Shown here: positions 4,126-50,624 of the stretch, piece by piece
Numbering within the stretch: position 1 is the first letter of the stretch
How the letters are laid out: each line of letters starts with the position of its first letter
Origin: Ylistrum balloti
Lineage: Eukaryota
Assembly (NCBI RefSeq): GCF_031769215.1
Contig: NW_026782078.1
Coordinates: forward strand, 744,001-808,000
Reading direction: 5' to 3'
Length of the DNA: 64,000 nt
Program-made: the position numbers and the translations under genes
The notes under the pieces: generated by a model
What the model was told of the DNA's origin: nothing
What the model saw: only the letters and a program-made list of their open reading frames with translations
Databases searched by the model: none

Positions 4126-7100
4126 ATGCTCGTGAAAACATCTCTCCATCTCGTGGTGCTGGCTGGTTTGGCCCTCTCAGTGGTATCCAGCCATATTGTT
4201 AAGGGAAAGGGAAACAATGACGACCAGCCTGGACAATCTAGACACGACGGGAAACGGGCCATGGACAATATGTACAAAGGCAAGTCGAGAATTATACCTG
4301 ATAAACAGTATATAATATTTGAAATTGTGAAAAACAACCTTGAATTTGCAACTGGAGTCTTTTTTCATTTGTTAGTAATTGGTATTAGCATTAAGTTGAG
4401 AACTAAAGTTTTCTTTATAAATGCTTAGTATTTTCATTCGATTTTATTTAAAGAAAATATTAGTTTTTTCCTAAAAAAAAATAGCGAAAGACACATAATA
4501 AAGCATATCGTATCATGGATATCGCAAATGTAATTATACTCCAAAGTCGGTATCGTAACACCGCCAATATTTGGTTATTAACATTATTTTGACGATACAA
4601 TGTATTTGACATCACAAGAATTATGACTATGATTTACAACCAAACCATGATATAGATAAAATGTTGTAATTTCTTAAATGTATACAAAATGTGCAGGTAT
4701 GATGGAGTCTTTTAAGACAAGTTTTGTTCCCGGATCCAAGAAGGACGACGGTAATGGTAATGGTGGTGACGCTTCCCCTAGTGATTGGAAGAATATGATA
4801 CCGGGTTTCGCGAAAGGTTTTATTCCTGATAGTGCAGAGGTATGTACAATATGGGTAGAGTTCTTTACAGATTTAGCACAGGTACGTAATGCAAGGCTAT
4901 ATAAATGTACTGGGATTGTAGAGTTACGCACGGTGAGGAATCGGTGTCTTTATGTTGTAGTTGTAGAGGTACGTAAGTTAAGGCTATATAAATGTACTGG
5001 GATTGTAGAGTTACGCACGGTGAGGAATCGGTGTCTTTATGTTGTAGTTGTAGAGGTACGTAATGCAAGGCTATATAAATGTACTGGGATTGTAGAGTTA
5101 CGCACGGTGAGGAATCGGTGTCTTTATGTTGTAGTTGTAGAGGTACGTAATGCAAGGCTATATAAATATCCTGGGATTGTAGAGTTACGGAAGTTGAGAA
5201 ATCGGTGTCTTTATGTTGTAGTTGTAAAGGTACGTAATGCAAGGCTATATAAATGTACTGGGATTGTAGAGTTACGGAAGTTGAGGAATCGGTGTCTTTA
5301 TGTTGTAGTTGTAGAGGTACGTAATGCAAGGCTATATAAATGTACTGGGATTGTAGAGTTACGCACGGTGAGGAATCGGTGTCTTTATGTTGTAGTTGTA
5401 GAGGTACGTAATGCAAGGCTATATAAATGTACTGGGATTGTAGAGTTACGGAAGTTGAGGAATCGGGGTCTTTATGTTGTAGTTGTAGAGGTACGTAATG
5501 CAAGGCTATATAAATGTACTGGGATTGTAGAGTTACGCACGGTGAGGAATCGGTGTCTTTATGTTGTAGTTGTAGAGGTACGTAATGCATGGCTATATAA
5601 ATGTACTGGGATTGTAGAGTTACGGAAGTTGAGGAATCGGGGTCTTTATGTTGTAGTTGTAGAGGTACGTAATGCAAGGCTATATAAATGTACTGGGATT
5701 GTAGAGTTACGCACGGTGAGGAATCGGTGTCTTTATGTTGTAGTTGTAGAGGTACGTAATGCAAGGCTATATAAATGTACTGGGATTGTAGAGTTACGCA
5801 CGGTGAGGAATCGGTGTCTTTATGTTGTAGTTGTAGAGGTACGTAATGCAAGGCTATATAAATGTACTGGGATTGTAGAGTTACGGAAGTTGAGAAATCA
5901 GTGCCCTTATATAGGTAAGGATATATCAATGTAAAGATTGATATTGTGTTTTGTATCTAAACAAATCATTTCTGATGCTACCTAGATAAGTGTCTATGGT
6001 ATATTGCTTGTTTTTATCATTATTTCTTTGCTGGGGTATGTAATATACGTAATTTTATGATAGTGAACATATTTCCTGTTTAAGATTGAGATAATGGGTT
6101 AAAATATAATAACATGAACGTTGAATGAAAATTGCGGAAATGTTTTCAAAATGAAAATGAGGCTGACACCATATATATTTCCCGTTTCTATTTTATTGAC
6201 GAATTAGAATTTAATGATTAATAATTTTATAAAGGAAAGTAACAAATTCTGATCTGGTTCGTTCTAGTTTGATGTAATATAAGCATGTTTTTGCTGTACG
6301 AGTTGATAGTTAATTATTCATACTTCATATAAAAGATGTATAAGTGTTTTGTGTTTTCACCAGGATGGTACAGATAACAGCACTGTCAGTGAGGACGCTG
6401 TTACAGATTCTTCTGCCACAAACTCAACTTCAATGGGCATCGAGGGATCGTTCAAGGTCAACGCTGCCCTCAAAGATGACAAATCCACTGCAGACGAAAC
6501 AATGACGTCACAAGATGGCGAGTCAGTCGATACCACCGCGCTACCGGAAGTTCTGTCAACTGACGACAATGTTCCGTCGGAATATGGACTTCTTACTGGT
6601 GAGAATGACCTAGCGAATATCAATACACAGTCAAGCGAAACAGGAGCAATGGAAACTCCAACAGATTTGTCTGGCACAAATGAGGAACAAGATGGTGACA
6701 TGACACAATTAGAAAACGATTTAGCGGAAACAACAGATGAAGACCTTAATCCTCAGGGAGACACTGGCACACAGTTAGATGATACAGAAACAGATTTGAA
6801 AGAAAAGGAGCCGGACACAGATGCAAAAAAGGTATATACCTAAGAATTAAGGCATTCATTATGTTGTTAAAATATTTGCTGATTTTTTTTGTAGTGATCA
6901 AGACAGGGCACTACCTAGATGACGTCACGATAATTATCACGTGATGTTCAGGAAATATTAACTGTTCAGGATCACATTGTTTGTCTACGTTATAATGATT
7001 TGTATTGTTTATGTTGAAAGTTATTGAATTGACTAAGAACGAACAATACTCTTCACTTGTATGATGTATATGTAATTAATTATTATTATTAACTGTCAGT

Positions 7101-7405
7101 TACCAGAGCGAAAAAAAAATTCATGTAAAAATATTGAAGAATTTCAGTTTCGCAGCCGATTAGAATTATTAGAATCATCAGCTCGAAATGACGACCCCAA
7201 TATGATTCTTGTGAAGATATTCTGTGTTATTGTTAGATTTCTACGTAAGCTATATAATTACCACTTTTTCTATGCGTTATTGGACATGCTAACCGAGCAT
7301 ATATAGTCTATGTTTCTAAAGATGGCTATGAGTGGTAAGGCGTCCCTCAAGCACGATGAGAAGCCGGTCACTGATGTAGAAGAAAAGAAGGAAACTACCA
7401 TTTAG
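4126..7405 (+). CDS. Cluster gene 1: secreted acidic low-complexity protein, 282 aa, 4 exons (4126-4279, 4697-4839, 6364-6831, 7322-7405)
   Basis: Signal-like MLVKTSLHLVVLAGLALSVVSS, then ...HDGKR-AMDNMYK. Intron 1 has a GC-AG donor (AAAG|gcaagt). Exon 2 reads G-MMESFKTSFVPGSKK...WKNMIPGFAKGFIPDSAE, exon 3 is D/E/T-rich, exon 4 reads MAMSGKASLKHDEKPVTDVEEKKETTI*. Phases 1,0,0 are consistent and the total of 849 nt is divisible by 3. AATAAA at 7422-7427; TATAAAA at 4069-4075. Exons 1-2 are clearly homologous to gene 2. Confidence 0.8.
4882..5910. repeat. 87-bp minisatellite, ~12 copies, at the start of gene 1 intron 2
   Basis: Unit gtacgtaatgcaaggctatataaatgtactgggattgtagagttacgcacggtgaggaatcggtgtctttatgttgtagttgtagag. 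Confidence 0.95.
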
Positions 7406-7770
7406 TCCTCACGGTACCACTAATAAAACATTGAATAACTGAACATGTACGTAACTGTAGTCTTTAATGCTGATTATAGATATAGTAAAATAACAATTCT
7501 CAAAAAGTACAGGCAATGTCCCTGTATTAAAGTTATTGAAACATTGATATAACACAAACTAAATTATCATTTCATGTGTGTTGCAACAATGCAACATGGA
7601 GTGTTTTGAGTATTACTGCTTGTGCTTTGAAATAATGTTAATCTATAGAACCAAATTAAATGTTTTAACTCAACACTTGTTTGTTCGCCCCAATTTGTTA
7701 AGAATATCTTAATATATCGTCAATTGATTACAGATCTTTTTCTTATTTTGTTTTGTCTTGTATATTTCAG

Positions 7771-7803
7771 ATTCCCACCAATCCAAACATGGCAATCCTG
7801 TAA
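7771..7803 (+). CDS. Candidate alternative last exon of gene 1 (IPTNPNMAIL*)
   Basis: Long pyrimidine tract ending tttgtcttgtatatttcag|ATT, phase 0, stop at 7801-7803, AATAAA at 7839-7844. Confidence 0.35.
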   Translation: MPTNPNMAIL

Positions 7804-9591: not shown

Positions 9592-9689
9592 GGAAAGTCA
9601 ATACCGAAAAATCCACGTGCAATGAAGGTTTGGAAAATATATTGTGATTTTTAAGGAACGACAACTCTGGCAGAGATTTGTATCACATA

Positions 9690-12777: not shown

Positions 12778-14499
12778 ATGGCCAGGAAGGTAGACATATC
12801 ATTGCTATTTGTCTTCGTTCTATTGTTATACTTTCCCCAACTTTCGAACGGATCTGATGATGAGCAGACCAAACACCATGACAAGCGAGCTATGGGTGGC
12901 ATGTTTAAAGGTAATACTAACGAAATTCAAAAAAACTTTTATCCTAAACTCCGACTTACATAATTTCTTATTGAAGAAATCCTCTGAAATCGGCAATCTT
13001 AGTTTTTTTAAAGTGGGAGGACAACCCAAAGCATAATTAATACAATATCTGTTCACTATTTGTCGATCAGTAAACTGTGAAAAAGAGAGGAATACTTTGA
13101 TAAAAACTTGAGATCATTAAGCGTCAATGTGATTGGTTTAGCCTATTTGTTGTTTGGTGGCTACATTAAGGAGTTTTTATACATAGTACTTACACTGTAG
13201 TTTATTTGATGTTTGTTGTAAAAGTAGAGGACAGTTATTAATGATTTAATAAACGAACGATTATATCTGTGATTTGCTATCAATGTGAAGGAATGTAACC
13301 AATACCTTTCTATGTATCTGCAGACATCTTGAAATCTATTAAAACCAACTTCGTCCCGGGCAGTAAGAGTAAGAATCAGAAAGGAGGCGACGGAGGAGAC
13401 GGCAATGCCGGGGGATCGTCCAGTGGCTCCTGGAAAAACATGATACCTGACATAGCTAAGGCGTTTATACCAGACGGAGACCAGGTATAGTGAACATATT
13501 TCTATCACATCAATCGACAATGAGTAACACAAGTGTCAAAATATTGTAGGAGCTTCATCTTTCGGCTGGAGGGCAAATCGTTATGGCATACACATAGTTA
13601 CAATAATTTTAGATATTTTCTTCTTCAAAATCTACGTATAAATCACTATGATTAAACATTTAGATAACTTAGCTATATAACGTAAGCATCACTGGTAACA
13701 CTTGTTCATTTGGAATACTATCTTTGCGGTACAGGATAACAGCACCTCGACAGAAGACATGCAGGATAACGATTCCAGCTCTAACGTCACAGAGGTAGAT
13801 CCACAGGCCACTGAAGTCAATGCAGGAGTAACAGAGAACATGGGACAAGATACAAAAGTGAACAAACAGGATAGCGGGACCCAAGACGACATATCAGAAG
13901 ATGATTATGATACACAGGCAAGTGGCAAGACAGATGATAAACATGATTCAAAAGCGGACAATGGTTCAGGCGAAAAGCAAGACAAAACAACTGAGAAACA
14001 GAATGCGAAAGTTAATGAAGGAATAACTGAAAATATGGGCCCCAATGTAGATTCGAATATGATGGTCAATGAAACAGGTGATAATATGACGCAACATGAA
14101 TCAATTACCCAGCTACCGACAGGTGTGCACGATACGGCGTTAAACGCTGTTCATGACAATGATAAGGCAGCAGCACTGTCGTGGGAAGATGAATCACAGG
14201 AAGCAGAACAAGAAAAGGAAGAATCAGAAAAGCAGAAAAGTAACGACGATCTGAAAAAGACCGAGGAAGCCGAAGTAAAAGTTAATGCCGGTGTTACTGA
14301 AAATCTGGGTAATGACAATGTCAACCCAAAGCCAGCTAAATCTGGCTTATCTGACAACGACCATGATGTCAACTCCAACACAACAGTTTCCACAGGAAAT
14401 GCACTTATGTTTGAACAAAGCCAACCTTTGTCATGGGAAAGCGAATCACCGGAGGTCCTAGAGGATGAAATAGAAAAAGAACGTCAAACAAGACGATAG
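12778..14499 (+). CDS. Cluster gene 2: secreted acidic low-complexity protein, 352 aa, 3 coding exons (12778-12910, 13324-13484, 13735-14499)
   Basis: Signal-like MARKVDISLLFVFVLLLYFPQLSNG, then SDDEQTKHHDKR-AMGGMFK|D-ILKSIKTNFVPGSK...WKNMIPDIAKAFIPDGDQ|DNST... GT-AG sites with phases 1,0; total 1059 nt. A GTAAGT donor follows the stop immediately, and a further exon begins at 14897. Confidence 0.8.
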
Positions 14500-19845: not shown

Positions 19846-20189
19846 TCGAGATTTCTGTCCACTACCCTATCTAACGCTCAGACATTGTGTTTACAGATAT
19901 ATATATATCTAACACTAAGACATAGTTTTTACATATGTATATGTGCATATATATGTATATGTGTATTTTCGTTTTCATCCAAAAAACCATTTACGAAACG
20001 GATTTAAGTATCTAGATGCATTCCCACAAATTTGATTGGTGTGTTTTAGAAATGTTTTACCAGTAAATAACAATTGTGAGAACCGAATTTTTAAGTCGGA
20101 ATCATAGTTACAACATCAATAAAAATGTGCATGCTATGTTACGTAGACTGTTCACTACATCACGTGAATGTGTAAGGCTACAGAGAGAG

Positions 20190-23100
20190 ATGCACGACTG
20201 GTACATCTGTTTGCTGGTTAGGCTGTTCATTCTACAGAGGGGTATTATACCCGTAGTTTGTGGTCCCTACACGGGGTACAGAGGGACTAATGGAGGTTCT
20301 TTCCAGGACGTATTATTTGGTGAGTGTTGTCTTTTCTACCAAGTAAATGGCAAGTTCGTTATTGTTGTTCCCGTCAACGGTTTTGTTTGAGATATAGTAG
20401 AGAATATATCTATTTTTTGTTATTTTTGTCTAATTAACGATATCAGTCATAATTCTATATATTTGATCGTCACAATTTTTAAGCTATAAATAAAAATGTA
20501 TATTTCTGTCAGCGTGTACAGCGTATACTGTATAACATTGAATGTTCAGGTAAAGCTAAATGAGACATCCGATTGAAGTATTATGTGTATAGTTATGTGA
20601 CGAGAATGAAATTTACACTCGATATGACAGGATTAAAACCACGAATAAAAATATCCACGAAAATGGTATGATGTATACCATGGCATTGCTATAACTAAAG
20701 TAACATATCAGCACAGATTCTACAGAAATTTTAAAATTTACAAAAACTTCAACATTTAAATATGAAAAAATATACACTATCCAACAAGCAATAATTAATA
20801 TAAAGCCTAATCTTTGCTGTTTATGGTTTTATAAACGAAAGTAATCACGTGGTAAGCGCGCCGTCCTTTTAATATGTTCATATCCAAAGGTTCATGCGAT
20901 TTTTCTCACTTGTATTTTCTCGTGTTTTCCACGCTCTTGTCGTACCGTCGTGTCTTATGACTAAAACATGTGCGATGTAAAAGTATTGTTATTTATTTAT
21001 AACTTAATCAGAATGTGTCACTGGTATGTTTTGTACCAGTCATCAGTTTTCTTTGTCATTTTTTGTAACAATCCTTGTATATATGTTTATTTATTTTGTA
21101 TTTTTATAAAGAAAATTTGTATTGATATGAACGTGTACTTTCATTAAGGAGTATTAGGTATAGTGTTGGTCCAAACAAAGCTGAAATCGATAGGACTGTA
21201 ATATACAACTTGTTATTTATGATTGATGGTAAATGAAAAAAGTTAAGTTTTTTTCATCAAAAGAGTTGGAATAAAAAAAATTCCAAAAATTATTTTTTAA
21301 ACGGAATTCGGAATTTTTACTTCCAGTACCAACACTTATCCTTATTCATCCCTTTTAAGCTCTTTAAAAGTGTAGTAAAAGCTAACGGCTAATATCAATA
21401 ATATTGATCACTCATGTTTACCCGGATGGAAGAGCACGAGAGTTCCTACTAAGGGAGGAAACCGCAGTACCTGAGGAAAACCCACAATGTCGGGCAAGTG
21501 AACCCCATACTAAATCACTGTTTATGAAACATTTGTTATTTGATATATCCAAGGAATGATATGGTCTCTCCACGATGTATAAACTAATTACTTTGATATC
21601 CAATAGTTAGTCGGTCTATGACGCCAAACCTTGTTATTGTAGGTGTCCCAATCGGCATGAAACACAGCCCATCAATCGTGGTACATGACTTAAATGATTC
21701 CGATGGTTCTGACGGTTCAGACGGCTCCGACGGCTCAGATCGTTCCGATTCATCGTTGTCGTCATCGTCGTCGTCATCGTCGTCCAGTGAATCAAATGAA
21801 GACGAAAGGGACGATGCACAAACAAATGGACGTGGAAATGATGATAGGCAATACAATGACAGAAACAGTGATGAAGATAGACGAGATGACGACAGTCGAA
21901 ATAGAAACAACGACGATGAAAATAGCAAGGAATTGCAGGCAGTGAAAGGTGACGAGAAAGGAAAAAACATGAATGAATATAAACTACAACAAATTTACAA
22001 TAATAAAAATGAACACGATAGCGAGGAGAAATCAGAAGATGTTGGCGACATCAAGAAAGCAAAACTAGACAATGCGGCGATTGTCCACGCTGTAACCAAA
22101 TCTGGATCCATGGATGGTGTTGCTGGTGAGACGGGAGGGGCTTCTCTGCCTTCTGTTAAAGATGGGCCTGAAACTGTTCTACCAGGAGAAGCAGACGGCA
22201 AATCGAGTAGTGATATTGATGAAAGTAGATCTAGAGGAGAAGACGACAGCAATGAAAGCAGGCCCCGAGGAGAGGATGATGGTCGCCCAAGAGGTGAAAA
22301 TACATCAGGTGGCAAGAAACAGTGGCCGAAACTTGTACCCGACATGTTCAAAAGTCTCGTACCCGAGGCGGTAAGAGAGATCAATATTTTTATTAATCCT
22401 TATCATTGGAGGACTTTAAAAGACATTTTAGAAATAAGATATCAGTAATAGATAGGTATTTCCATGATATAGAAAAGGCACGATGCCAAATGTATTTTAA
22501 CTTTCATAAAAAATAAAATGCTGAATGTCACATTTCTATATAACAGAAGAAAAACAACACCAAGCACACTATGACCGCAGAAGGAAAGAAAAACAACACA
22601 AGGGGACAGGAAACCGTCAGCAAAAGTAACCATGGATGGCCATACTTTGTACCTGAAGTATTTAAACCGCTTATACCAGACACGGTAGGTGACGACCATA
22701 CTTAGTACCGGAAGTATCTAAACCGCTTATACCAGACACGGTAGGTGACGGTCATACTTTGTACCGGAAGTATTCAAACTTCTCATACCAGACACGGTAG
22801 GTGACGGCCATACTGTACCGGAAGTATTTAAACCGCTCATACCACATACGGTAGGTGACGGCCATACTTTGTACCGGAAGTATTTAAACCTCTCATACCA
22901 CATACGGTAGGTGACGGCCATACTGTACCGGAAGTATTTAAACCTCTCATACCAGACACGGTAGGTGACAGCCATACTTTGTACCGGAAGTATTTAAACC
23001 GCTAATGCAAGACATGGTAGGTGTCTATCTTAATTTATACCGGAAGTATTTAAACCGCTCATACAAGACACGGTAAGTGATGGTCATACTTTATACCGGA

Positions 23101-25066: not shown

Positions 25067-25817
25067 ACACCGGGAAGAGAGGCCAGTGTAACGATTGTAC
25101 CGGCTGCTTCCACTGCGGTTAACGTCTCAAGGAGGGGCAGTACGATGGTGACTTTTCTTAATACCACGTGTTTCTGACATAACGTACACTTTCACAATTT
25201 CATCAGACATCATCCATGCTTGTTTTGATTTTTGCTATTTTTCGGATCATACTAGTATTTTCATTAAATGTAGATGTTTTACTACTCAGAGTTCCATATA
25301 CAATTATTTACATGTATATGATGTTCTTAATGACGTTTTATTAACTCTGTGTACCTTTGTCATCGATTTCATGAAAATGATCTGGAGAAAATGATAGAGC
25401 TCAAAACATGCTCAGTCATCTACCCTTCGTTCTGGTGAAAGTTTGTCTATATTTCAACTGTCCATAAGTATACAGAGCCATCCTTTTATGTTCTACAAGA
25501 TTTTCTCAATAAAATTTACACTTCCATCTGAAATGTACGTTGTGTACTAAATTGTATTACTTCACGTGTTCTTCTAGTCATCATTATGAAGGAAACAGTC
25601 GGTGCTTTATCAAGCGAGTAGAGTGGGATATCTTGTCAGTTACATGTGTGTCATAAAGCTTCATTCAAGTACAACAAAGTAAATGTAGTTATAGCTTCAA
25701 AGGATGGTATCTTACCGTTCTTATTGGAAGTCATTTTCACTTTAGAATAAATAATAACAACCACTTGTGTCCACATACGGGCAGTAAATATAGCTGATAA
25801 ATGATAGGGTATGATAA

Positions 25818-25853
25818 GTCACGTGGTACAGTCACATGCTAGAAGTCACATGA
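25818..25853. promoter_or_regulatory. Triple E-box cluster upstream of gene 4
   Basis: gtcacgtgg (25818), gtcacatgc (25831) and gtcacatga (25845) within 36 bp. Confidence 0.4.
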
Positions 25854-34589: not shown

Positions 34590-35475
34590 TATAGACCAGA
34601 CCAGAGTGTAGCGATATAGAGCCCAGACAGGAGTGTAGCGATATAGAGCCCAGACAGGAGTGTGGTGATATACAACACAGACCAGAGTGTAGTGATATAG
34701 AGCCCAGACAGGAGTGTGGTGATATAGAACACAGACCAGAGTGTAGTGATATAGAGCCCAGACCGGGTTGTAGTGATATAGAACACAGACCAGAGTGTAG
34801 TGATATAGAGCCCAGACCAGAGTGTAGTGATATAGAGCCCAGACCAGAGTGTAGTGATATAGAGCCCAGACTGGGTTGTAGTGATATAGAGCCCAGACCG
34901 GGGTGTAGTGATATAGAGCCCAGACCAGAGTGTAGTGATATAGAGCCCAGACCGGGTTGTAGTGATATAGAGCCCAGACCGGGGTGTAGTGATATAGAGC
35001 CCAGACCAGAGTGTAGTGATATAGAGCCCAGACCAGAGTGTAGTGATATAGAGCCCAGACCAGAGTGTAGTGATATAGAGCCCAGACCAGAGTGTAGTGA
35101 TATAGAGCCCAGACTGGGGTGTAGTGATATAGAGCCCAGACTGGGGTGTAGTGATATAGAGCCCAGACCAGAGTGTAGTGATATAGAGCCCAGACCAGAG
35201 TGTATTGATATAGAGCCCAGACCAGAGTGTAGTGATACAGAGCCCAGACCGGGGTGTAGTGATATAGAGCCCAGACCAGAGTGTAGTGATATAGAGCCCA
35301 GATCAGAGTGTAGTGATATAGAGCCCAGACCAGAGTGTATTGATATAGAGCCCAGACCAGAGTGTAGTGATACAGAGCCCAGACCGGGGTGTAGTGATAT
35401 AGAGCCCAGACCGGGGTGTAGTGATACAGAGCCCAGACCGGGGTGTAGTGATACAGAGCCCAGACCAGAGTGTAA
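34590..35475. repeat. 27-bp minisatellite, ~32 copies
   Basis: Unit gtgtagtgatatagagcccagaccaga. Confidence 0.95.
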
Positions 35476-35757
35476 TGAGGAAGATTTTAAGAATTGTCAG
35501 CAGTTTTCCTGACTGAGGAGGTATTAGTGCCCGCTTTGAGTAAGTATGAGTAAGTACTTGTTTGTCGACAAAGAGATTATATCATTGGCTTTCATGATTG
35601 CTACAGCTGGCATGACCGTAAATGTACCAGCATAACACAAACAGTTACAAACACGTGATCTGAGGTGTTTACAACCTGTTGTACGATCCCGAGATAAGTC
35701 TCATACAAATACTGTCCTCTGTTGGGTTTACTTTCCATTTTATGATCCTATTAACAC

Positions 35758-38254
35758 ATGTGTGACACAAAAATGATGTTTCAAAAATACATCATTCTGA
35801 TATGTATTCAAGTATTCGTAGTTCAGATAGTACTGTCACCAGTATCCTACGGCAAAACTGCGCCCTCTAACGGCACAGAGAATGAGGACGTGCCCAGAAA
35901 TATCAGCAGCGATCCAGGAAGAAAAAGTACAGTGGGGAAAGCACTTGCAGATCTCATCAAAGGTAACGTGTCCGGGAATTTGTGGGGAAGGAACTTGTAG
36001 ATCTCATCAAACGTAACGTGTCCGGGAATTTGTGGGGAAGGAACTTGTAGATCTCATCAAAGGTAACGTGTCCGGGAATTTGTGGGGAAGGAACTTGTAG
36101 ATCTCATCAAAGGTAACGTGTCCGGGAATTTGTGGGGAAGGAACTTGTAGATCTCGTCAAAGGTAACGTGTCCGGGAATTTGTGGGGAAGGAACTTGTAG
36201 ATCTCATCAAAGGTAACGTGTCCGGGAATTTGTGGGGAAGGAACTTGTAGATCTCATCAAAGGTAACGTGTCCGGGAATTTGTGGGGAAGGAACTTGTAG
36301 ATCTCATCAATGGTAATGTGTCCGGGAATTTGTGGGGAAGGAACTTGTAGATCTCATCAAATGTAACGTGTCCGAGAATTTGTGGGGAAGGAACTTGTAG
36401 ATCTCATCAAAGGTAACGTGTCTGGGAATTTGTGGGGAAGGAACTTGTAGATCTCATCAAATGTAACGTGTCCGGGAATTTGTGGGGAAGGAACTTGTAG
36501 ATCTCATCAAACGAAACGTGTGCAGGAATTTGTGGGGAAGGAACTTGTAGATCTCATCAAAGGTAACGTGTCCGGGAATTTGTGGGGAAGGAACTTGTAG
36601 ATCTCATCAAAGGTAACGTGTGCAGGAATTTGTTGGGAAGGAACTTGTAGATCTCATCAAAGGTAACGTGTCCGGGAATTTGTGGGGAAGGAACTTGTAG
36701 ATCTCATCAAAGGTAACGTGTCCGGGAATTTGTGGGGAAGGAACTTGTAGATCTCATCAAAGGTTACGCGTGCAGGAATCTGTTGGGAAGGAGCTTGCAG
36801 ATAACCTCAAAGGTAATGTCTTCAGAAATTTGGATGGGGGTGGGGGCGGAAATCGCAAATCTGAAGAAAGAAAGAATGATCTGTAAATGTACCTGTATTT
36901 TCTGATAGAATTACCTTAATCACTCTGAAGCAGAGCATGTATATAAATGTGACAGGCCGCCCGAATACAAGCTGACGTTTATAACATCAGGTATATCTAA
37001 AGTGTATGTATTATCATCGGAAATTTATTACAACTAAGTTATTTCATCTGAATTCGAATCCTACATAGACAAGTATAAAACGGATTTAATCTAACACATA
37101 GTGAAGAATAGTTCAATGCAGCAAATGTTCGGAAATTTAAAGAATTATCATATCTTAGGCAGGGTTTGATATTCGACGCCATGATCTCATTCGGAAAACA
37201 TGTTTGTTTGTTTGTTTTTATTATTCTTAATCTGCAGGTACTTATTCATGAATAGGTGTGTATTTCTTTCTTTCGTTCAAATTCTGATATCATTTTGATC
37301 GGTTCTGCATTTGAGTACAGGGTTTAGACAATATTTTTCTTTAGTGACTATCATTGATATTTTATGTCATGTTCCAGCTATCTTCAGACTGATAAGGGTT
37401 GAGATTAAGTCAACCGAAGATCTTATACCTGACTTTGAAGATGACCCGAACCGTGACCCCATGTCACTACCTCTAATAACGGTCAGTTTATCTTCAAACA
37501 ATTGCATGTCGCCATTCCTTCTAGTAACGATCAGCATACATACCACATGACCTGTTACTTACTCTACAACGGTATCTCCCATGTGACCACGTGTTACTTC
37601 CTCTGATAACTTTTCCTCTCTCGTGATCTTATCATGTAACTCCCTCTTTTAACGGCCATTGTATCTCCAATATATTTCCAACATGATATAATTTGACTTC
37701 CTCGGTTAGCATATTTCCCACGTGACCCATTGTTAGCTTTCAATATATACAGACACTCCCTCTACAATAATAATGAATCCGCTTAATAAATACTTTGTTT
37801 TTTTTAGATTGAGAACGTGAACGGGACACTTGTAGCCACCTCCAGGGACGTCAACATATACGACGCCATAAGAGATGTAAGACTTCTGTTTCCGTCACTC
37901 TCGCTCACAAAACTCGCCTCTTTACTCAGATTACTAATTCGATTTCTCCGTAAACTGTTGTAGATTCTGTATACCAATTAAAAAGCACACATTTATACAT
38001 GTATGGCGCAGTTTTTCTTCTTTCTGTGTATCACATCAGTGTCAAAGTACTGTGTGAATGAAATAAATCATAAGACTTTAATCATAAACAAAACCCTGCT
38101 AATTCCTGTACTTCCTATCTGTGAACAGCAACAACGACGTCAAAATAACAGCCACGAGGTGCACTATGTTTCCGGTCAGCAAGATGGCGGCATATCTGTT
38201 GAGGGGGCTGGTCTCAGCAAGGAAGGAATGGATTCAGGCGAGAATGAGCTCTGA
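35758..38254 (+). CDS. Cluster gene 5: secreted protein, ~167 aa, 4 exons (35758-35962, 37378-37481, 37808-37876, 38129-38254)
   Basis: Hydrophobic MFQKYIILICIQVFVVQIVLSPVSYG, then ...PGRK-STVGKALADLIK|A-IFRLIRVEIKSTEDLIPDFEDD...LIT|IENVNGTLVATSRDVNIYDAIRD|QQRRQ...ENEL*. Canonical GT-AG sites, phases 1,0,0; total 504 nt. The exon 3 start resembles gene 4 exon 3 ([VI]E-x-x-NG-x-x-V-x-T). The start could be at 35758, 35773 or 35776. Confidence 0.72.
35951..36820. repeat. 50-bp minisatellite, ~17 copies, made of the gene 5 exon 1 end plus 5' splice site
   Basis: Unit atctcatcaaaggtaacgtgtccgggaatttgtggggaaggaacttgtag. Confidence 0.95.
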
Positions 38255-39084
38255 AAATAGAAGACTTATTATAGAGAAATTGTATATCATAACTTCCAAA
38301 ATTAAAAATGGTATCCGCAAAAGGTCAGAGTCCAAGAAGAATTATCACTTTTTTAGAACAAAGTGATATAGTTTCATAACTCTATGTTACAATTTTGCGA
38401 TTACATATCGCATTTAGCCAATGGAGTGTCTGGTGAAAAAGTGTACGATGTTTGTGACCTTCATTTAGGAATGACTTATTTAACGGCAACTTAGCGTAAT
38501 GTTATCACCATGTCACTAAAGCTACGGTATAGTCACCTGTGTGAGGACTGTACTTATGGTGTATACCTACACTAATGTCATTATGTATCCTAAGTTTGTA
38601 AGTTGGTGGAATTGAATTCAACTAGAATAATATCGCTAGTTTTTATTTAGTTTCCTTTATTAAATAAATGGGATTAAAATCACACGTTACATGATTTTAC
38701 AAATTTAAAATCACATGAATCTGATTGTTTTGATTTAGATTGTTGATTTGAAATTTCTATCATTATTCATACGTAATGTGGTATATACATATAGCTTTGT
38801 AATTCCTACATTAGCAGTGTGTGTTGAGACTTTGACTTAAATTTGAGACATAATTTGACGACTGTTAAAACAAGATGTTTACAGTAAAAGCTATTGTTTC
38901 TGTTTTTGTTTGTTTTGATGTGTTTTTTTTTTATTTTTCCTGTAATTTACATTTAGTTTAATATTGGTCCGTGTAAATTATAAATCAGGCAAATAGACCA
39001 AGCATCTCTGTAATCGACTCTAAGTGTTCATGTCAATAAAAAAAAAACCAGCAGAAATGTTTGTTTTGTTATCAGTTCATATTA

Positions 39085-42000
39085 GGTTACCACATCTGAA
39101 GTAAGTATACCACATCTGAAGTAAGGTTACCACATCTAAAGTAAGGTTACCACATCTGAAGTAAGGTTACCACATCTAAAGTAAGTATACCACATCTGAA
39201 GTAAGGTTACCACATCTAAAGTAAGGTAACCACATCTGAAGTAAGGTTACCACATTTACAGTAAGGTTACCACATCTGAAGTAAGGTTACCACATCTAAA
39301 GTAAGGTTACCACATCTGAAGTACTGAAGTAAGGTTACCACATCTGAAGTAAGGTTACCACATCTGAAGTAAGGTTACCACATCTAAAGTAAGGTTACCA
39401 CATCTAAAGTAAGGTTACCACATCTAAAGTAAGGTTACCACATCTAAAGTAAGGTTACCACATCTGAAGTCTGAAGTAAGGTTACCACATCTGAAGTAAG
39501 GTTACCACATCTAAAGTAAGGTTACCACATCTAAAGTAAGGTTACCACATCTGAAGTAAGGTTACCACATCTGAAGTAAGGTTACCACATCTGAAGTAAG
39601 GTTACCACATCTGAAGTAAGGTTACCACATCTAAAGTAAGGTTACCACATCTAAAGTAAGGTTACCACATCACCACATCTGAAGTAAGGTTACCACATCT
39701 AAAGTAAGGTTACCACATCTAAAGTAAGGTTACCACATCTGAAGTAAGGTTACCACATCTGAAGTAAGGTTACCACATCTAAAGTAAGGTTACCACATCT
39801 AAAGTAAGGTTACCACATCTGAAGTAAGGTTACCACATCTGAAGTAAGGTTACCACATCACCACATTTAAAGTAAGGTTACCACATCTGAAGTAAGGTTA
39901 CCACATCTGAAGTAAGGTTACCACATCTAAAGTAAGGTTACCACATCTGAAGTAAGGTTACCACATTACCACATCTGAAGTAAGGTTACCACATCTAAAG
40001 TAAGGTTACCACATCTGAAGTAAGGTTACCACATCTAAAGTAAGGTTACCACATCTAAAGTAAGGTTACCACATCTGAAGTAAGGTTACCACATCTGAAG
40101 TAAGGTTACCACATCTAAAGTAAGGTTACCACATCTGAAGTAAGGTTACCACATCTGAAGTAAGGTTACCACATCTGAAGTAAGGTTACCACATCTGAAG
40201 TAAGGTTACCACATCTGAAGTAAGGTTACCACATCTAAAGTAAGGTTACCACATCTAAAGTAAGGTTACCACATCTGAAGTAAGGTTACCACATCTGAAG
40301 TAAGGTTACCACATCTGAAGTAAGGTTACCACATCTGAAGTAAGGTTACCACATCTGAAGTAAGGTTACCACATCTGAAGTAAGGTTACCACATCTGAAG
40401 TAAGGTTACCACATCTAAAGTAAGATTACCACATCTGAAGTAAGTAAGGTTACCACATCTTAAGTAAGGTTACCACATCTGAAGTAAGGTTACCACATCT
40501 AAAGTAAGGTTACCACATCTGAAGTAAGGTTACCACATCTGAAGTAAGGTTACCACATCTGAAGTAAGGTTACCACATCTGAAGTAAGGTTACCACATCT
40601 GAAGTAAGGTTACCACATCTGAAGTAAGGTTACCACATCTAAAGTAAGGTTACCACATCTGAAGTAAGGTTACCACATCTGAAGTAAGGTTACCACATCT
40701 GAAGTAAGGTTACCACATCTGAAGTAAGGTTACCACATCTGAAGTAAGGTTACCACATCTGAAGTAAGGTTACCACATCTAAAGTAAGGTTACCACATCT
40801 GAAGTAAGGTTACCACATCTGAAGTAAGGTTACCACATCTGAAGTAAGGTTACCACATCTTAAGTAAGGTTACCACATCTGAAGTAAGGTTACCACATCT
40901 GAAGTAAGGTTACCACATCTGAAGTAAGGTTACCACATCTGAAGTAAGGTTACCACATCTGAAGTAAGGTTACCACATCTGAAGTAAGGTTACCACATCT
41001 GAGGTAAGGATACCACATCTGAAGTAAGGTTACCACATCTGAAGTAAGGTTACCACATCTGAAGTAAGGTTACCACATCTGAAGTAAGGTTACCACATCT
41101 GAAGTAAGGTTACCACATCTGAAGTAAGGTTACCACATCTGAAGTAAGGTTACCACATCTGAAGTAAGGTTACCACATCTGAAGTAAGGTTACCACATCT
41201 GAAGTAAGGTTACCACATCTGAAGTAAGGTCACCACATCTGAAGTAAGGTAACCACATCTGAAGTAAGGTTACCACATCTGAAGTAAGGTTACCACATCT
41301 GAAGTAAGGTTACCACATCTGAAGTCTGAAGTAAGGTTACCACATCTGAAGTAAGGTTACCACATCTGAAGTAAGGTTACCACATCTGAAGTAAGGTTAC
41401 CACATCTGAAGTAAGGTTACCACATCTAAAGTAAGGTTACCACATCACCACATTCTGAATTAAGGTTACCACATCTGAAGTAAGGTTACCACATCTGAAG
41501 TAAGGATACCACATCTGAAGTAAGGTTACCACATCTGAAGTAAGGTTACCACATCTGAAGTCTGAAGTAAGGTTACCACATCTGAAGTAAGGTTACCACA
41601 TCTGAGGTAAGGATACCACATCTGAAGTAAGGTTACCACATCTGAAGTAAGGTTACCACATCTGAAGTCTGAAGTAAGGTTACCACATCTGAAGTAAGGT
41701 TACCACATCTAAAGTAAGCTTACCACATCTTAAGTCTGAAGTAAGGTTACCACATCTGAAGTAAGCTTACCACATCTGAAGTAAGGTTACCACATCTGAA
41801 GTAAGGTTACCACATCTGAAGTAAGGTTACCACATCTGAAGTAAGGTTACCACATCTGAAGTAAGGTTACCACATCTGAAGTAAGGTTACCACATCTGAA
41901 GTAAGGTTACCACATCTAAAGTAAGGTTACCACATCTGAAGTAAGGATACCACATCTGAAGTAAGGTTACCACATCTGAAGTAAGGTTACCACATCTGAA

Positions 42001-42270
42001 GTCTGAAGTAAGGTTACCACATCTAAAGTAAGGTTACGTAAGGTTACCACATCTAAAGTAAGGTCACCACATCTAAAGTAAGGTTACCACATCTGAAGTC
42101 TGAAGTAAGGTTACCACATCTGAAGTAAGAATACCACATCTGAAGTAAGGTTACCACATCTAAAGTAAGGTTACCACATCACCACATCTGAAGTAAGGTT
42201 ACCACATCTGAAGTAAGGTCACCACATCTAAAGTAAGGTTACCACATCTGAAGTAAGGATACCACATCTG
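39085..42270. repeat. 20-bp minisatellite, ~155 copies
   Basis: Unit gtaaggttaccacatctgaa, with a ...ctaaa variant. Confidence 0.95.
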
Positions 42271-44125
42271 GGACTATATTGTATGGTGATTTTACACTCC
42301 TGAAGTGTGGTAGTTGTATGGAGACACTCTGTACTCCTGAAGTGTGACTATAGTTGTATGGTGATACTCTACACTCCTGAAGTGGAACTATAGTTGTATG
42401 GTGATACTCTACACTCCTGAAGTGTGGTTATAGTTGTATGGAGACACTCTGTACTTCTGAAGTGTGACTATAGTTGTATGGTGATACTCTACACTCCTGA
42501 AGTGGGACTATAGTTGTATGGTGATACTCTACACTCCTGAAGTGGGACTATATTTGTATGGAGACACTCTGTACTCCTGAAGTGTGACTATAGTTGTATG
42601 GTGATACTCTACACTCCTGAAGTGGGACTATAGTTGTATGAAGACACTCTGTACTCCTGAAGTGTGGCTGTATCTGTATTGTGATACTCTGTACTCCTGA
42701 AGTGGGACTATAGTTGTATGGAGACACTCTGTACTTCTGAAGTGTGGCTATAGTTGTATGGTGATACTCTACACTCCTGAAGTGGGACTATAGTTGTATG
42801 GAGATACTCTACACTCCTGAAGTGGGACTATAGTTGTATGGAGATACTCTACACTCCTGAAGTGGGACTATAGTTGTATGAAGACACTCTGTACTCCTGA
42901 AGTGTGACTATAGTTGTATGGTGATACTCTACACTCCTGAAGTGGAACTATAGTTGTATGGTGATACTCTACACTCCTGAAGTGGGACTATAGTTGTATG
43001 GTGATACTCTACACTCCTGAAGTGTGACTATAGTTGTATGGTGATACTCTACACTCCTGAAGTGTGGCTATAGTTGTATGGAGACACTCTGTACTCCTGA
43101 AGTGTGACTATAGTTGTATGGTGATACTCTACACTCCTGAAGTGGACTATAGTTGTATGGTGATACTCTACACTCCTGAAGTGTGGCTATAGTTGTATGG
43201 AGACACTCTGTACTCCTGAAGTGTGACTATAGTTGTATGGTGATACTCTACACTCCTGAAGTGGAACTATAGTTGTATGGTGATACTCTACACTCCTGAA
43301 GTGTGGCTATAGTTGTATGGAGACACTCTGTACTTCTGAAGTGTGACTATAGTTGTATGGTGATACTCTACACTCCTGAAGTGGGACTATAGTTGTATGG
43401 TGATACTCTACACTCCTGAAGTGTGGCTATAGTTGTATGGAGACACTCTGTACTCCTGAAGTGTGACTATAGTTGTATGGTGATACTCTACACTCCTGAA
43501 GTGGGACTATAGTTGTATGGTGATACTCTACACTCCTGAAGTGGGACTATAGTTGTATGGAGACACTCTGTACTTCTGAAGTGTGGCTATAGTTGTATGG
43601 TGATATTCTACACTCCTGAAGTGGGACTATATTTGTATGGAGACACTCTGTACTCCTGAAGAATGGTTATAGTTGTATGGAGACACTCTGTACTCCTGAA
43701 GTGTGACTATAGTTGTATGGTGATACTCTACACTCCTGAAGTGGGACTATAGTTGTATGATGATACTCTACACTCCTGAAGTGTGGCTATAGTTGTATGG
43801 AGACACTCTGTACTCCTGAAGTGTGACTATAGTTGTATGGTGATACTCTACACTCCTGAAGTGGGACTATAGTTGTATGGTGATATTCTACACTCCTGAA
43901 GTGTGGCTATAGTTGTATGGAGACACTCTGTACTCCTGAAGTGTGACTATAGTTGTATGGTGATACTCTACACTCCAGAAGTGGGACTATAGTTGTATGG
44001 TGATACTCTACACTCCTGAAGTGTTGCTATAGTTGTATGGAGACACTTCGTACTCCTGAAGTGTGACTATAGTTGTATGGTGATACTCTGTACTCCTGAA
44101 GTGTGGCAATAGTTGTATGACAATA
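42271..44125. repeat. 40-bp minisatellite, ~46 copies, two interspersed variants
   Basis: Unit tatagttgtatggtgatactctacactcctgaagtgggac, alternating with a ...ggagacactctgtactcc... variant. Confidence 0.95.
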
Positions 44126-45590: not shown

Positions 45591-45654
45591 CTTAAGTTGA
45601 CCTTGGATAACGTAGCTGAAGATGTCGTCTCATGAATTTTGTATTCGAATTACA

Positions 45655-46700: not shown

Positions 46701-47153
46701 ACTTTCACGGAAGAAAGAGTCAACGTCAGCAATCTACACTTATTCATAGTTATAATGTTTCTGTTAGATAACAAACGTCACAAGTATTTAAGATGTTTTG
46801 ATCATTTATATATATCGACCCTTAGCTTTTACTAATGACTAAATTAACTCTCTTTACCTGACATGTGTCTTTGACCTAGCCCCCATTACCGTCTCTCTAA
46901 CTAATGTAACAGATGGAATACTGAGATGTTATATCACAGCAACTACAGACACATGCATTAAGTAATAGTCATGTGACATGCTCATATTTGTCTTTATCTT
47001 TATGTAAAGGAACATATAAAAATATTTACAGCAAACGAAAGATCCTTTTGTAAAAGGCTTCTGTGTGAGCAGGCAAACATATCATAATACGGAACATGTG
47101 CCATTCTGTGAAGGACTTGTGAATTTCCAGTGAAGTCATTTATCATATAGACA

Positions 47154-50100
47154 ATGTTTCTGTCCAGAAAAGGCTTGTGGTTCTCCTTCAGTGTTTTACT
47201 TATATATACATCTATCGTGTGTGTGAATTCTACCAAACAAGACAATGACGCGATAGGAAATGCATTCGGAAGCCTGTTTAAAGGTATAACCGGGATTTTC
47301 TGTTTCGAGTAGTATAATGTTTTTCGAAAACTTTGAAAAGATGTGCATTATGAAATTTGATTCTTTCATACCATTATTTTTAATGTGGTTTGATTTAGAT
47401 ATATTTTAATAGCGTTGTGGGGATTCTTTATCTGCGATAATGTACGCGTATGTTTCCTGTTTCTGTATATCCTGGTTTTCTATCGTCATCTTTTGTCCCG
47501 GTGTGTTGACGTGGTAAAATCTTGGTGATTTTTTCAGTCGTATGGTCCTTTTTGTTATCTGTCAATGCTCCGATAGTTTGCTCTATGTCATCATGTATGG
47601 GTTGTCCCTGTTGTACTGTATGACCGATTATTTTCACGGGATGATGGTCAAGTTACATTAATAAAGTGTGAATTAACGAGACAATTGTATCTAAGATGTT
47701 CTTATCGGACCAGATCGTGAAATGTTCATTAAGAAATATATATAATTTTTAAAGAAAATCGTAAAAGCTTTCACCCGTGAAAATTACAAGTTGTACGATA
47801 TATAGGTTAAGAAATACATTAGTATTACACACGTATAAAAGTTTATTTCTATAGTAGCTGCATGTTACCAGAGTAATTATCAGTATGTGTTATTGGTGTG
47901 TTATTCCGATCACCCTACACGCTGATGTGACGATGTTTATGTTTGTGTCATTCTAAATTTGACGTTGCCATGTTGTTTAAATGGTTCCTTTAGGAACACT
48001 CATACCATCCTGGTATTCTTGTGATTTTTCTTTAAGCAATACTCAACGTCGTAAGGTCACAATTCGAAGCAACAAAGGATTTTGTTCCTGGACTCGATAC
48101 GGCTGGAGGATCCACAAATCTCACGACTCAGGTATGTTGTCTCATCTTACGTCATCAAAAGTTACCAAAACATTTGTAATCATGTTTAGCTAACAGATGG
48201 ACCGGTGAGCTTACTCCATGGCGCAGCGTTCGTCGTCGGCGTATCTAAATTTTACTAAATGTCGCTACTTGTCATGAACGACAGAACAGATTGTAATCAT
48301 AACTGGTATGATGCACTCTTCGCGGAAGAAGAACGAAGTTTGTATAAATATTGGTTTTCAGCCCCCAGTGGTGTGATGGACGGGTCCCGAAAGGGAAAGT
48401 TTTGCAAACTCCTACTCCTCCTGAATGAATGGATGAAAATTGCCCAAAACTGGTATGAAGCATTCCTGGATGAAGAGGAATCAATCTTGTATAACTGGTG
48501 GGTCTCGACCTCTTGGGGCTGCAAGGGCGGAGCTCAATATAGAAAATAATGCAGATTCTTCGAAATTCTACTCCTCTTGTAGCAATGATTTAATTTTGTG
48601 CAAATTTGGTCTGAAGTGCTCTTGAGTGAAGCGGAATAAGTTCTGTACAACCTGTGGATACTGGCCACCTGGAGCGGGAGGGGTTGGGCAAAACTGGAGA
48701 ATTCTAAGTTCACAAAAATCCTCTTCCATTCAAGGATATTGTCCAAGTGTTGTCTGAAGCAATTTTCATGAATAGTGAATCTGACTTCAGTTTCAGCACA
48801 AGGCCAGGTAATTTTTGTTATCACCATTATTTATGTTTTTTCCTTTGATTACACAAACAGCGTATTACATACGTATAACTATTTAGCTGTGTTATTTACT
48901 TTTCTAGAATGCTGGAGTAAATGACATTGGGGATCAGACGAATCATGACACCAAGGTAAGTTGCAAATTTAATACTTAAGTAATGCCAAGAATAAGGAGG
49001 GGAAAAGGTCAAACGAGGAAAATTTGGGAAATAGACTGAACCTTAAAGACCTTATCAGAGCAATGATTGGGAAAGCCAAAATACTGGGACATGTTCACAA
49101 TGCAGCCGAGTAGGTAACCAGCAAGCACTCTAAAGGATATTATATAAGGAATATATTTCCCAGGAGTATGAGTGATTCACCAAGGATTAGGAGCAGGTTG
49201 TCAACTGTTATCATGGCTCGGCACATCATGCTGATATGGAAAGTGACTTGCATTTCAACTTCAATAACTTTCAACTAATACTCATAATTATATATATATC
49301 TTTATATAGGTAATCATGAATATTAGTTGAGAGGGTTTGACTGTATGAATTTATTCAAATACAAAGTCTGCAATCTATCATAATGTTTTATGGAGAGAAA
49401 ATACTATTTTTGTATAAGGCAAATTCATTAGTTGATTTTAATATATGCAGAAAAGTGGTATTAAGGGTATTATGTTTAGAAAATAATAATTAAATTGTGA
49501 TTCTCTCCTGGCAGGTTGGCATGAAGGTAGACATGAAATCGAAGAAAATCTTTTTCAATGACGATGTTAAGCATTCTACAGAGAGTCCATCTATCGACGA
49601 GGAAGCTCTGTCGCCTCCAACAGTCATGGGAGATCATGGAACCACCGATGAATCCCAGGACAGTGCAACTAATGTGCCTGGTCCAGAATACCAGGAAAGT
49701 CATCAGGATCAAACCTCAGATCAGAGAACTGGGGACGAAAGTCAAATCGGTTCAACAACACAAAGCACACAGGATAACTACCAGTCATCAGATACTGGGG
49801 ATGCCTTCGGGAATAGTAAAATTCCGGATGTTTCTTTCTCGGGTGGGAAATCTTTGTCATCAAGCGACGGTCTCCCAGGCCAGGTACATGGACCGGATAA
49901 GTGGCCATTCCAGCCTGATGTTAAAGACATGTTAGGAGTTCTTGGAAAGGAAATAACTGAACCAGTCGAAGTGTTTGGAGGAAAGCATGAAATAGATCAA
50001 GCAGGGTTTGTTCTTGCAAACAACATGACCGAAATTTCCATGCCAACGAATGAGTCGTCACCCAGCCACACAGCCGTGGAATCCACAGATTCACCAAATA

Positions 50101-50624
50101 TCCAACAGCCAGGTCAGGAAGCGGAAAACGGAGCGCCGATTCAAGGGACTGGACAACCCAACACATTGTCAGATAACGTTGATAACACAGCGAAGGAGTC
50201 TGGAGGATTCGATGGCGAAAACCCATTACTGCATCTACAGGAATTACAAACAGGAGTCGAGGAAGAAGTATGGCCAATTGAGCAAAACGTGGGTGATATG
50301 ATTCAGACTGTAGAGACAGAACTGGTTCAGCATGGAATGTCTTCTCCAGCTGGTAAGGGACAAGGACAAGGTCACGATTACATTGGTGGTCTGGAACCTA
50401 ACGGTGGACCACTAACAGAATCTAATCTATCTGCTGACAAAGAAAACGTTGAAACAACTGAGCAGGCTAATGGTGATGATAGCGACGTAAAACTCGAGAC
50501 AAAACCTCTTGTTGTCAGCGAAGGAAGTGATCTTGATCAGAACTCTCATAACACAGGAGGTACGAAAGGCACACAAAAGTCTGACGATTCCAATACTCTT
50601 CTGCGGTTAGTGAATACTATATAA
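47154..50624 (+). CDS. Cluster gene 6: secreted acidic low-complexity protein, 460 aa, 4 exons (47154-47283, 48037-48131, 48908-48955, 49515-50624)
   Basis: Signal-like MFLSRKGLWFSFSVLLIYTSIVCVNS, then ...AIGNAFGSLFK|A-ILNVVRSQFEATKDFVPGLDTAGGSTNLTTQ|NAGVNDIGDQTNHDTK|VGMKVD... The last exon is 1110 nt and S/T/D/E/Q/G-rich. Phases 1,0,0; total 1383 nt. Confidence 0.78.
48185..48830 (+). mobile_element. HINE-like non-autonomous element in gene 6 intron 2
   Basis: Starts tttagctaac...gtgagctta...cgttcgtcgtcggcgt, followed by three degenerate ~150 bp internal repeats (aactggtatga.gca.t...gaagagga...t.ttgtataa.tggt). Confidence 0.5.

Follow-up and report, generated by a model that had tools for sequence, protein, structure and literature searches.

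What are the six genes that stand one after another, all on the plus strand, in a 64,000-nucleotide stretch of the genome of the saucer scallop Ylistrum balloti (contig NW_026782078.1, positions 744,001 to 808,000; this whole stretch is called the window here, and coordinates are those within it)? Models rebuilt from the sequence place six spliced genes in tandem at 4126-50624, numbered 1 to 6 below, and the locus raises the questions of whether they are one family, whether such a family is already known, and what its products might do. We think it fairly probable, the functional part included, that they are a tandem scallop family of secreted proteins in which a docking helix is joined to a polyanionic tail; the description of the family is much firmer than the functional part of this statement. 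What has come out is a well-supported description of a family, not of a mechanism.

A tandem cluster and the shared plan of its products

Intron 1 is in phase 1 in all six genes, and the later introns that were resolved are all in phase 0. The first exons end one base into a codon, after [Y/F/I]K and with the G that follows (LF and G in gene 3), and the coding sequence (CDS) lengths are multiples of three without internal stops, which for gene 4 refers to the two exons checked, 1 and 2. A previous reading of the letters alone (the sequence-only reading) had described signal-like first exons with a phase-1 donor, phase-0 introns thereafter and CDS lengths divisible by three; this pattern was reproduced, and the six gene starts and first-exon ends of the rebuilt models fall exactly where that reading had put them. 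Its remark that the cluster is hidden from the open reading frame (ORF) track holds only for a prokaryote-style ORF track, as RefSeq models already cover at least five of the six genes; those of genes 1, 2, 5 and 6 agree with the rebuilt ones (287, 352, 162 and 460 amino acids (aa), respectively). The observation of the cluster is confirmed as real, and its interpretation proved essentially right, apart from the corrections on the tails, gene 5 and gene 4 that are given below.

The products share a plan that consists of a signal-like N-terminus, a short polar spacer, an amphipathic helix of ~18-25 residues, a hydrophobic-[VI]-P-[G/D/E] motif and an acidic tail; the tails differ widely in length among members and are Cys-free, rich in sequons and largely disordered. 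Our working definition of the family joins the phase-1 junction, found in six of six genes, to a hydrophobic-[VI]-P-[GDE] motif near the start of exon 2, found in five of them; gene 3 has a related double motif at two exon ends in place of the early exon 2 motif. The helix spans the junction between exons 1 and 2 and links genes 1, 2, 4, 5 and 6. In genes 2, 4, 5 and 6 no 18-mer of the entire protein is more amphipathic than this junction segment (the best 18-mer of gene 1 is shifted by two residues), which has a hydrophobic moment of 0.53-0.78 (shuffle p<=0.009) and a net charge of +1 to +3, gene 4 (-3) being the exception. Directly before it genes 1, 2 and 5 carry a conserved dibasic site, which is absent in genes 4 and 6. 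No helix is predicted at the junction of gene 3, the most amphipathic stretch of which is the first of its W..P..K..P motifs (below). AlphaFold models the junction helix at residues 36-53 in gene 2 and 32-57 in gene 6, as the first helix besides the N-terminal hydrophobic one.

Beyond their first 25 residues, the part for which mature composition was computed, the products have an isoelectric point (pI) of 4.1-4.9 and a D+E content of 17-33%, and they are rich in D/E/S/T/N/Q/G; no Cys occurs in this part of the resolved products. Each protein has 2-11 N-x-S/T sequons and 1-6 S-x-E sites. The AlphaFold models of genes 2 and 6 have mean predicted local distance difference test scores (pLDDT) of 45 and 35, respectively, with only short helices; among the latter are those modelled at conserved islands of the gene 6 tail, the C-terminus of which is conserved as well. 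The acidic, D/E/S/T/N/Q/G-rich composition and the disorder claimed from the letters are borne out by these pI and pLDDT values. The long tails claimed with them are found in part: gene 5, at 162 aa, is short and has no long tail.

How firmly do these features tie the six genes to one another? Genes 1 and 2 have the whole of exon 2 in common, with the helix's second half, the FVPG sequence, a linker rich in Gly and a motif of 15 residues, W-K-N-M-I-P...F-I-P-D. This W..P..K..P motif stands at four exon 3' ends, one each in genes 1 and 2 and those of exons 2 and 3 in gene 3, and it is letter-identical in Mizuhopecten. When pairs of modules were aligned and scored against composition-preserving shuffles, the pairs 1-2, 5-6 and 2-6 stood out with p<=0.0005, and the pairs 1-6, 4-6 and 4-5 with p values of 0.007, 0.015 and 0.02, none of the remaining cross-pairs reaching significance; a profile-profile alignment of the gene 1/gene 2 orthologue set with the gene 5/gene 6 set gave P=3e-4 and laid junction Lys on junction Lys. 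Module and motif alignments thus reproduce the two subfamilies, 1+2 and 4+5+6, with gene 3 attached through the second motif, that the sequence-only reading had drawn, and its statement that the tails are mutually unalignable agrees with the absence of any alignability beyond composition between tails of paralogues (shuffle p > 0.08). A candidate third common motif (KVNAG-like), in exon 3 of genes 2 and 6, was rejected, as it was not significant against composition-preserving shuffles. That these genes are tandem duplicates follows from the module alignments, the 15-residue motif, the shared orientation and adjacency, and an intron 1 that agrees in position and phase throughout.

Orthologues and selection in other scallops

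Mizuhopecten yessoensis carries genes 1-4 in the same order and on the same strand, Pecten maximus carries genes 5 and 6 together with the same convergent VWA-domain neighbour, and in Argopecten irradians genes 1 and 2 are present, with unrelated genes after them. Splice sites and phases are conserved between species. We estimated the ratio of nonsynonymous to synonymous substitution rates (dN/dS) from codon alignments made exon by exon against Mizuhopecten, Argopecten and Pecten, with gene 3 exon 4 left out and with no ratio taken where dS was saturated (gene 4 exon 1 against Mizuhopecten and gene 2 exon 3 against Argopecten). Across these comparisons dS is ~0.9-2.3, save in exons 3-4 of gene 5 (0.2-0.4), and dN/dS is 0.01-0.42. 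The module exon (exon 2 of genes 1, 2, 5 and 6) has a dN/dS of 0.02-0.07 and a protein identity of 79-91%; the signal exons have a dN/dS of 0.09-0.33, and the large tail exons one of 0.17-0.39 with a protein identity of 41-65%. Purifying selection is thereby shown to be strongest on the helix/motif module and weaker, but real, on the tails.

These comparisons bear out the view of an old tandem family, which now has syntenic orthologues in three other scallop genera at a dS of ~1 or more, and of a conserved N-terminal module, which in paralogues also aligns in register with the intron. They show, too, that local duplication had produced the array by the time the sampled scallop genera split. 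To call the tails "freely evolving", as had been done, was an overstatement. Since dN/dS is 0.17-0.39 in the large tail exons (up to 0.42 in the last exon of gene 1), they diverge fast but are not free; they hold conserved islands, and the last exon of gene 3 (exon 5) is 93% identical to its Mizuhopecten counterpart, with a dN/dS of 0.01 at synonymous sites that are saturated (dS >2). Tails called "disordered" can therefore be under strong constraint, as this last exon illustrates.

Known families and the weighing of explanations

Is the family already known under another name? A profile of the module exon, run with HMMER against 1.84 billion representative proteins, found only two clusters, which hold the scallop orthologues of genes 1 and 2; three further matches (including P0009 and P0010) were discarded as repeat proteins matched by low complexity. 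No product of the six genes matched Pfam at curated cut-offs, no PDB sequence matched the family, Rfam and tRNA scans gave nothing, and we found no paper with the accessions, locus names, motif strings or automatic names of the family. The look-alikes returned by the ESM Atlas were a mixture of small secreted disordered proteins, MEPE and bombinin clusters among them, all under a meaningful score. Names given to orthologues are driven by composition ("acidic repeat-containing protein-like", "clumping factor A-like", "dentin sialophosphoprotein-like"). That no named family or domain had been recognised in the letters is thus matched by blanks in Pfam, in PDB, in the 1.84-billion-protein profile search and in the papers. 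Judged from these searches, the family is restricted to scallops, and none of the sources searched recognises these six genes as a family. As a lineage-restricted cluster of secreted acidic disordered proteins it is a known sort of thing, but the family is new.

The layout does recall that of the vertebrate SCPP/SIBLING genes (DSPP, MEPE). In both, genes of one orientation stand in tandem and open with a short coding exon that bears the signal; the secreted products are acidic and disordered and contain S-x-E sites, and their tails change quickly from one paralogue to the next. An MEPE cluster is among the weak ESM Atlas look-alikes. A tandem cluster of acidic disordered S-x-E proteins of the SCPP type is what we find here, as an analogy only, for there is no sequence homology that we could find. 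SCPP genes have coding introns of phase 0 throughout, even behind the signal-peptide exon, whereas the first coding intron is in phase 1 in six of six scallop genes. The conserved unit differs as well, being an amphipathic helix plus hydrophobic-V/I-P motif in the scallop family and a signal peptide plus S-x-E exon in SCPP, and so does the distribution, SCPP genes being confined to vertebrates and the scallop family to scallops. Descent from SPARC/SPARCL1 is not indicated either, as no SPARC-related Pfam domain was found and module matches occur only in scallops. The parallel drawn by the sequence-only reading consequently stands as an analogy of layout, and a defining feature of SCPP genes fails, because intron 1 is in phase 1.

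Closer at hand are the acidic mollusc shell-matrix proteins, such as Aspein, Asprich, scallop MSP-1 and Pif. These and the products of the scallop cluster are alike in being signal-bearing, very acidic, disordered and lineage-restricted, and the DSDG and poly-Ser runs of gene 3 and the D/N runs of gene 4 (a poly-D run in Mizuhopecten) add to the likeness. The conserved neighbour of the cluster is a VWA-domain gene, and PMC5854119, the source for the Pif/VWA context, describes the VWA domain as common in shell proteins. In the module-profile and Pfam searches no homology to shell-matrix proteins and no named relative came up. To our knowledge, a junction helix and motifs of the present kind are not features of families of the Aspein/Asprich/MSP-1/Pif type. 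Precursors of antimicrobial peptides (dermaseptin/bombinin) offer another likeness, in that genes 1, 2 and 5 encode a signal, a polar/acidic spacer, a dibasic site and a cationic amphipathic helix, and granins resemble the family in their acidic disordered bulk with scattered dibasic pairs. The scallop helix, in contrast to the active part of antimicrobial precursors, lies N-terminal to a long acidic tail and does not form the C-terminal end; the dibasic site is missing from genes 4 and 6, and there is no homology with antimicrobial precursors or granins.

In the explanation that we favour, the products would be secreted, and the helix-plus-motif module would be their working interface, docking them to a hydrophobic or membranous partner or to a matrix; alternatively, the module might help the proteins to be sorted and condensed along the secretory pathway. 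The polyanionic and presumably glycosylated tail would supply bulk negative charge for the binding of Ca2+ or mineral or for hydration, and the site of action would be the extracellular matrix or a secretion, for example shell matrix, extrapallial fluid, ligament or mucus. Several points weigh against this explanation. A role in matrix or mineral is deduced purely from composition, and the products are judged to be secreted from their signal-like N-termini only, among which that of gene 3 has a hydrophobic core interrupted by Arg. Genes 3 and 4 are tied to the family by short motifs and the common intron position, the module pairs 1-4, 2-4 and 1-5 were not significant on their own against composition-preserving shuffles, and gene 4 is secured for exons 1-2 only, an ab initio search for later exons having given no more than tentative candidates. 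In addition, the sole public run (X1), with a uniform depth of ~10 across introns and exons over 20150-25100, heterozygous differences and no joints, is genomic DNA and silent on splicing.

A reader who stresses the dibasic sites might see peptide precursors in these genes. After removal of the signal, a convertase would cut genes 1, 2 and 5 at the dibasic site and free an active N-terminal cationic amphipathic helix as a host-defence, membrane-active or signalling peptide, while the acidic tail would neutralise charge as a pro-region or serve packaging in the manner of granins. The order of signal, polar/acidic spacer, KR/RK site and amphipathic helix is indeed kept between species in genes 1, 2 and 5, the helices have net charges of +1 to +3 and hydrophobic moments of up to 0.78, and the cluster of bombinin antimicrobial precursors was a look-alike, at 0.63, well under a meaningful score. 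We nevertheless hold this explanation to be unlikely, for the helix is not preceded by a dibasic site in genes 4 and 6 and is net acidic in gene 4, a conserved signal for cleavage or amidation is missing after it, no solved peptide among PDB sequences is similar, and the tails exceed known pro-regions by far, lie C-terminal to the helix and are constrained, with conserved islands. Less probable still is an already characterised mollusc family of shell-matrix, ligament or mucus proteins that low complexity has caused to be overlooked. The orthologues carry names driven by composition in the sources, the DSDG/poly-Ser of gene 3 and the poly-D/N runs of gene 4 are like those of acidic shell proteins, and the named shell proteins entered the sequence comparison only indirectly, through database searches; against this, the module profile returned from 1.84 billion representatives the two scallop clusters and three chance matches of low complexity, Pfam gave no match at curated cut-offs, and no paper contained the accessions, locus names or motif strings.

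The least probable explanation, and in our view a very improbable one, is that the six are not one family, but unrelated lineage-specific neighbours that converged on a signal peptide and acidic low complexity. Tails that cannot be aligned between paralogues would be expected of such neighbours, as would module pairs that are not significant alone, and a word-indexed search with residues 1-100 of gene 2 returned gene 2 orthologues only; since even gene 1 was not recovered by that search, its blank carries no weight. Convergence does not agree with the common orientation of all six genes, with a phase-1 intron at the same place in each that in five members lies inside the amphipathic helix, with the network of significant module alignments in register with that intron, or with a 15-residue motif at exon ends that genes 1, 2 and 3 have in common. 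A bolder form of the secreted docking-helix explanation is that scallops invented a family with an SCPP/SIBLING-like role, the junction helix and hydrophobic-V/I-P motifs anchoring polyanionic tails to an organic framework or membranes and the anchored tails steering the formation of foliated-calcite shell or ligament, or else that the family is a new helix-bearing class of host-defence proteins; we regard this as doubtful.

In either version of this bolder form, the cluster would provide a self-contained and experimentally tractable family with an "anchor plus polyanion" module that has no relatives outside Pectinidae. Mollusc genomes hold many lineage-restricted secreted disordered proteins, few of which have been grouped by a defined conserved module. 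In the present case an intron-marked helix, hydrophobic-V/I-P motifs and VWA-adjacent synteny unite six genes that were "uncharacterized" or bore misleading names, together with their orthologues in three other genera, and the shared module would be a handle for functional tests of such proteins.

Gene models and sequence surroundings

The RefSeq gene for gene 1 covers 4126-7405, and its product is of the same length (287 aa) as that of our four-exon model. Exon 1 (4126-4279) encodes the signal-like N-terminus, the spacer, a dibasic site (GKR) and the N-terminal half of the amphipathic helix, and ends in phase 1 after ...MYK and G at a GC donor. Exon 2 (4697-4839) is the conserved module, with the second helix half, FVPG, the Gly-rich linker and WKNMIPGFAKGFIPD; it is 91% identical to Mizuhopecten and 89% to Argopecten, with a dN/dS of 0.02-0.04. 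The disordered acidic tail follows in exon 3 (6364-6831; 65% identity to Mizuhopecten, dN/dS 0.24), and exon 4 (7307-7405) supplies the last 32 aa and the stop codon (protein identity 56-65%, dN/dS 0.17-0.42 over the 32 codons). The donor of intron 1 at 4279/4280 is GC in Ylistrum (AAG/GCAAGT, the slash marking the exon end) and GT at the same place in the Mizuhopecten orthologue; the GC donor appears to be in use, because the length of the RefSeq product implies it.

Gene 2 consists of exon 1 (12778-12910; signal-like N-terminus, DKR site and start of the helix, ending in phase 1 after ...MFK and G), exon 2 (13324-13484; the module with FVPG and WKNMIPDIAKAFIPD, dN/dS 0.03-0.04) and exon 3 (13735-14499), an acidic tail that carries short conserved motifs and is 49-52% identical to its orthologues at a dN/dS of 0.17. 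The spliced product is letter-identical to RefSeq protein P0001 (352 aa), and the largest exon matches XP_060067883.1, "uncharacterized protein LOC132548077", at 100% (contig JAUZWB010000107.1 of GCA_031769215.1).

Gene 3 differs from its RefSeq model, which starts at 21657, has 481 aa and is without the exon at 20190-20319. We place exon 1 there, as an atypical signal-like exon that ends in phase 1 after ...VLF and G. Over its full 43 aa it shares 51% identity with the start annotated for the 538-aa Mizuhopecten orthologue (L002 16958), in which the donor has the same position and phase, and the Met that begins the Ylistrum RefSeq model is a Leu in Mizuhopecten. Because the exon is conserved and annotated as the start in Mizuhopecten, and because the RefSeq Met is a Leu there, a start at 20190 is the better model; the Ylistrum RefSeq model looks N-terminally truncated on this sequence comparison, and restoring the first exon corrects one gene model of the annotation. 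Exon 2 (21643-22370) encodes a tail with DSDG, poly-Ser and D/R/N-rich stretches that closes with the motif WPKLVPDMFKSLVPE (61% identity to Mizuhopecten, dN/dS 0.20), and exon 3 (22547-22684) closes with the second copy of the motif, WPYFVPEVFKPLIPD (87% identity to Mizuhopecten, dN/dS 0.06). Exon 4 (23904-24008; 35 aa) is required for the RefSeq length of 481 aa. The C-terminal 162 aa come from the strongly conserved exon 5 (24578-25066), which is rich in Lys, Gly, Pro and Asn, of disordered composition, and unusually constrained for a sequence of low complexity. Mizuhopecten has a second annotated model (235 aa, L002 20197-22930), perhaps a read-through or an alternative one, which begins 58 base pairs (bp) past gene 3 and overlaps with the gene 4 orthologue.

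For gene 4, exons 1 and 2 of the earlier model hold and its 3' part is not secured. Exon 1 (26571-26763) encodes a signal-like N-terminus and a D/N-rich stretch, ends in phase 1 after ...IIK and G, and matches, at 42% identity, the start of an annotated Mizuhopecten gene of 268 aa (L002 22126) that has the same donor after K and G. Exon 2 (30057-30136), drawn from the Ylistrum sequence alone, continues the helix in frame with exon 1 and contains DLVPE. Ab initio prediction alone suggests a tentative exon 3 (31044-31154; 37 aa, phase 0) and a tentative last exon (34122-34175; 17 aa and stop). A 305-codon open frame in a 27-bp repeat (34595-35509, 32.7 copies), which opens right after an AG and encodes PECSDIEPR-like units, was considered as the gene 4 tail and rejected: differences among its copies fall 6/28/24 at codon positions 1/2/3 and carry no coding signature. 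Since the differences show no codon-position bias, the repeat is not taken as coding and is probably a non-coding minisatellite with a chance open frame.

Gene 5 has its exon 1 at 35776-35962 (signal-like N-terminus, spacer, GRK site and helix start, ending in phase 1 after ...LIK and G; 77% identity to Pecten) and its exon 2 at 37378-37481 (helix continuation with DLIPD; 91% identity to Pecten, dN/dS 0.04). Exon 3 (37808-37876) is 96% identical to Pecten, and exon 4 (38129-38254) contains the stop and ends where the RefSeq gene ends (38254); the 162-aa RefSeq product fits our model if its start is the ATG one codon upstream (35773). The spliced product of gene 6 is letter-identical to RefSeq protein P0005 (460 aa). 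Its exons are at 47154-47283 (signal-like N-terminus and helix start, ending in phase 1 after ...LFK and G), 48037-48131 (helix continuation with DFVPG; 79% identity to Pecten, dN/dS 0.07), 48908-48955 (16 aa) and 49515-50624, the last being the long acidic tail with the conserved helical islands and C-terminus (41% identity to Pecten, dN/dS 0.32).

Downstream of gene 6 and tail-to-tail with it, on the minus strand, lies the VWA-domain gene (51039-60624 and beyond; 420-aa RefSeq product with PF00092 and PF13519), and the same tail-to-tail arrangement is found in Pecten maximus. In Argopecten irradians (L003 18762-24522) a Metallophos-domain gene and a NACHT/CARD gene, and not gene 3, lie past gene 2; the cluster of this species is broken or rearranged, at least within 10 kb.

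The window is AT-rich (G+C ~27-42% per 2-kb interval) and densely filled with minisatellites. Very long arrays fill much of the intergenic and intronic space (31476-33991, 39084-44119, 58120-59558 and 60701-64000), examples being 23-bp x 108, 20-bp x 155, 40-bp x 46 and 40-bp x 36 arrays and one with a 64-bp unit that runs to the window end. Three arrays involve splice junctions of the cluster. An 87-bp unit repeated 11.9 times (4880-5910) begins in intron 2 of gene 1, 41 bp from its start, and looks like the junction of exon 2 with the intron, and a 56-bp unit repeated 9.9 times (22638-23189) starts within exon 3 of gene 3 and repeats the exon end that codes for the motif together with the GTAGGT donor; both are absent at the same sites in Mizuhopecten. 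The third occupies the start of gene 5 intron 1 (35932-36816), and its unit contains the exon end and the 5' splice site (...CTCATCAAAG/GTAAC..., the slash again marking the exon end). Ylistrum has 17.7 copies of a 50-bp unit here; the array at the orthologous place in Pecten maximus (L005 1315-2078) is built of a 20-bp unit, present 37.8 times. Use of a later donor copy in the Ylistrum array would shift the frame into a stop. These donor-site arrays of gene 5 may act as decoy or U1-binding donor sites, or may merely mark a fragile site.

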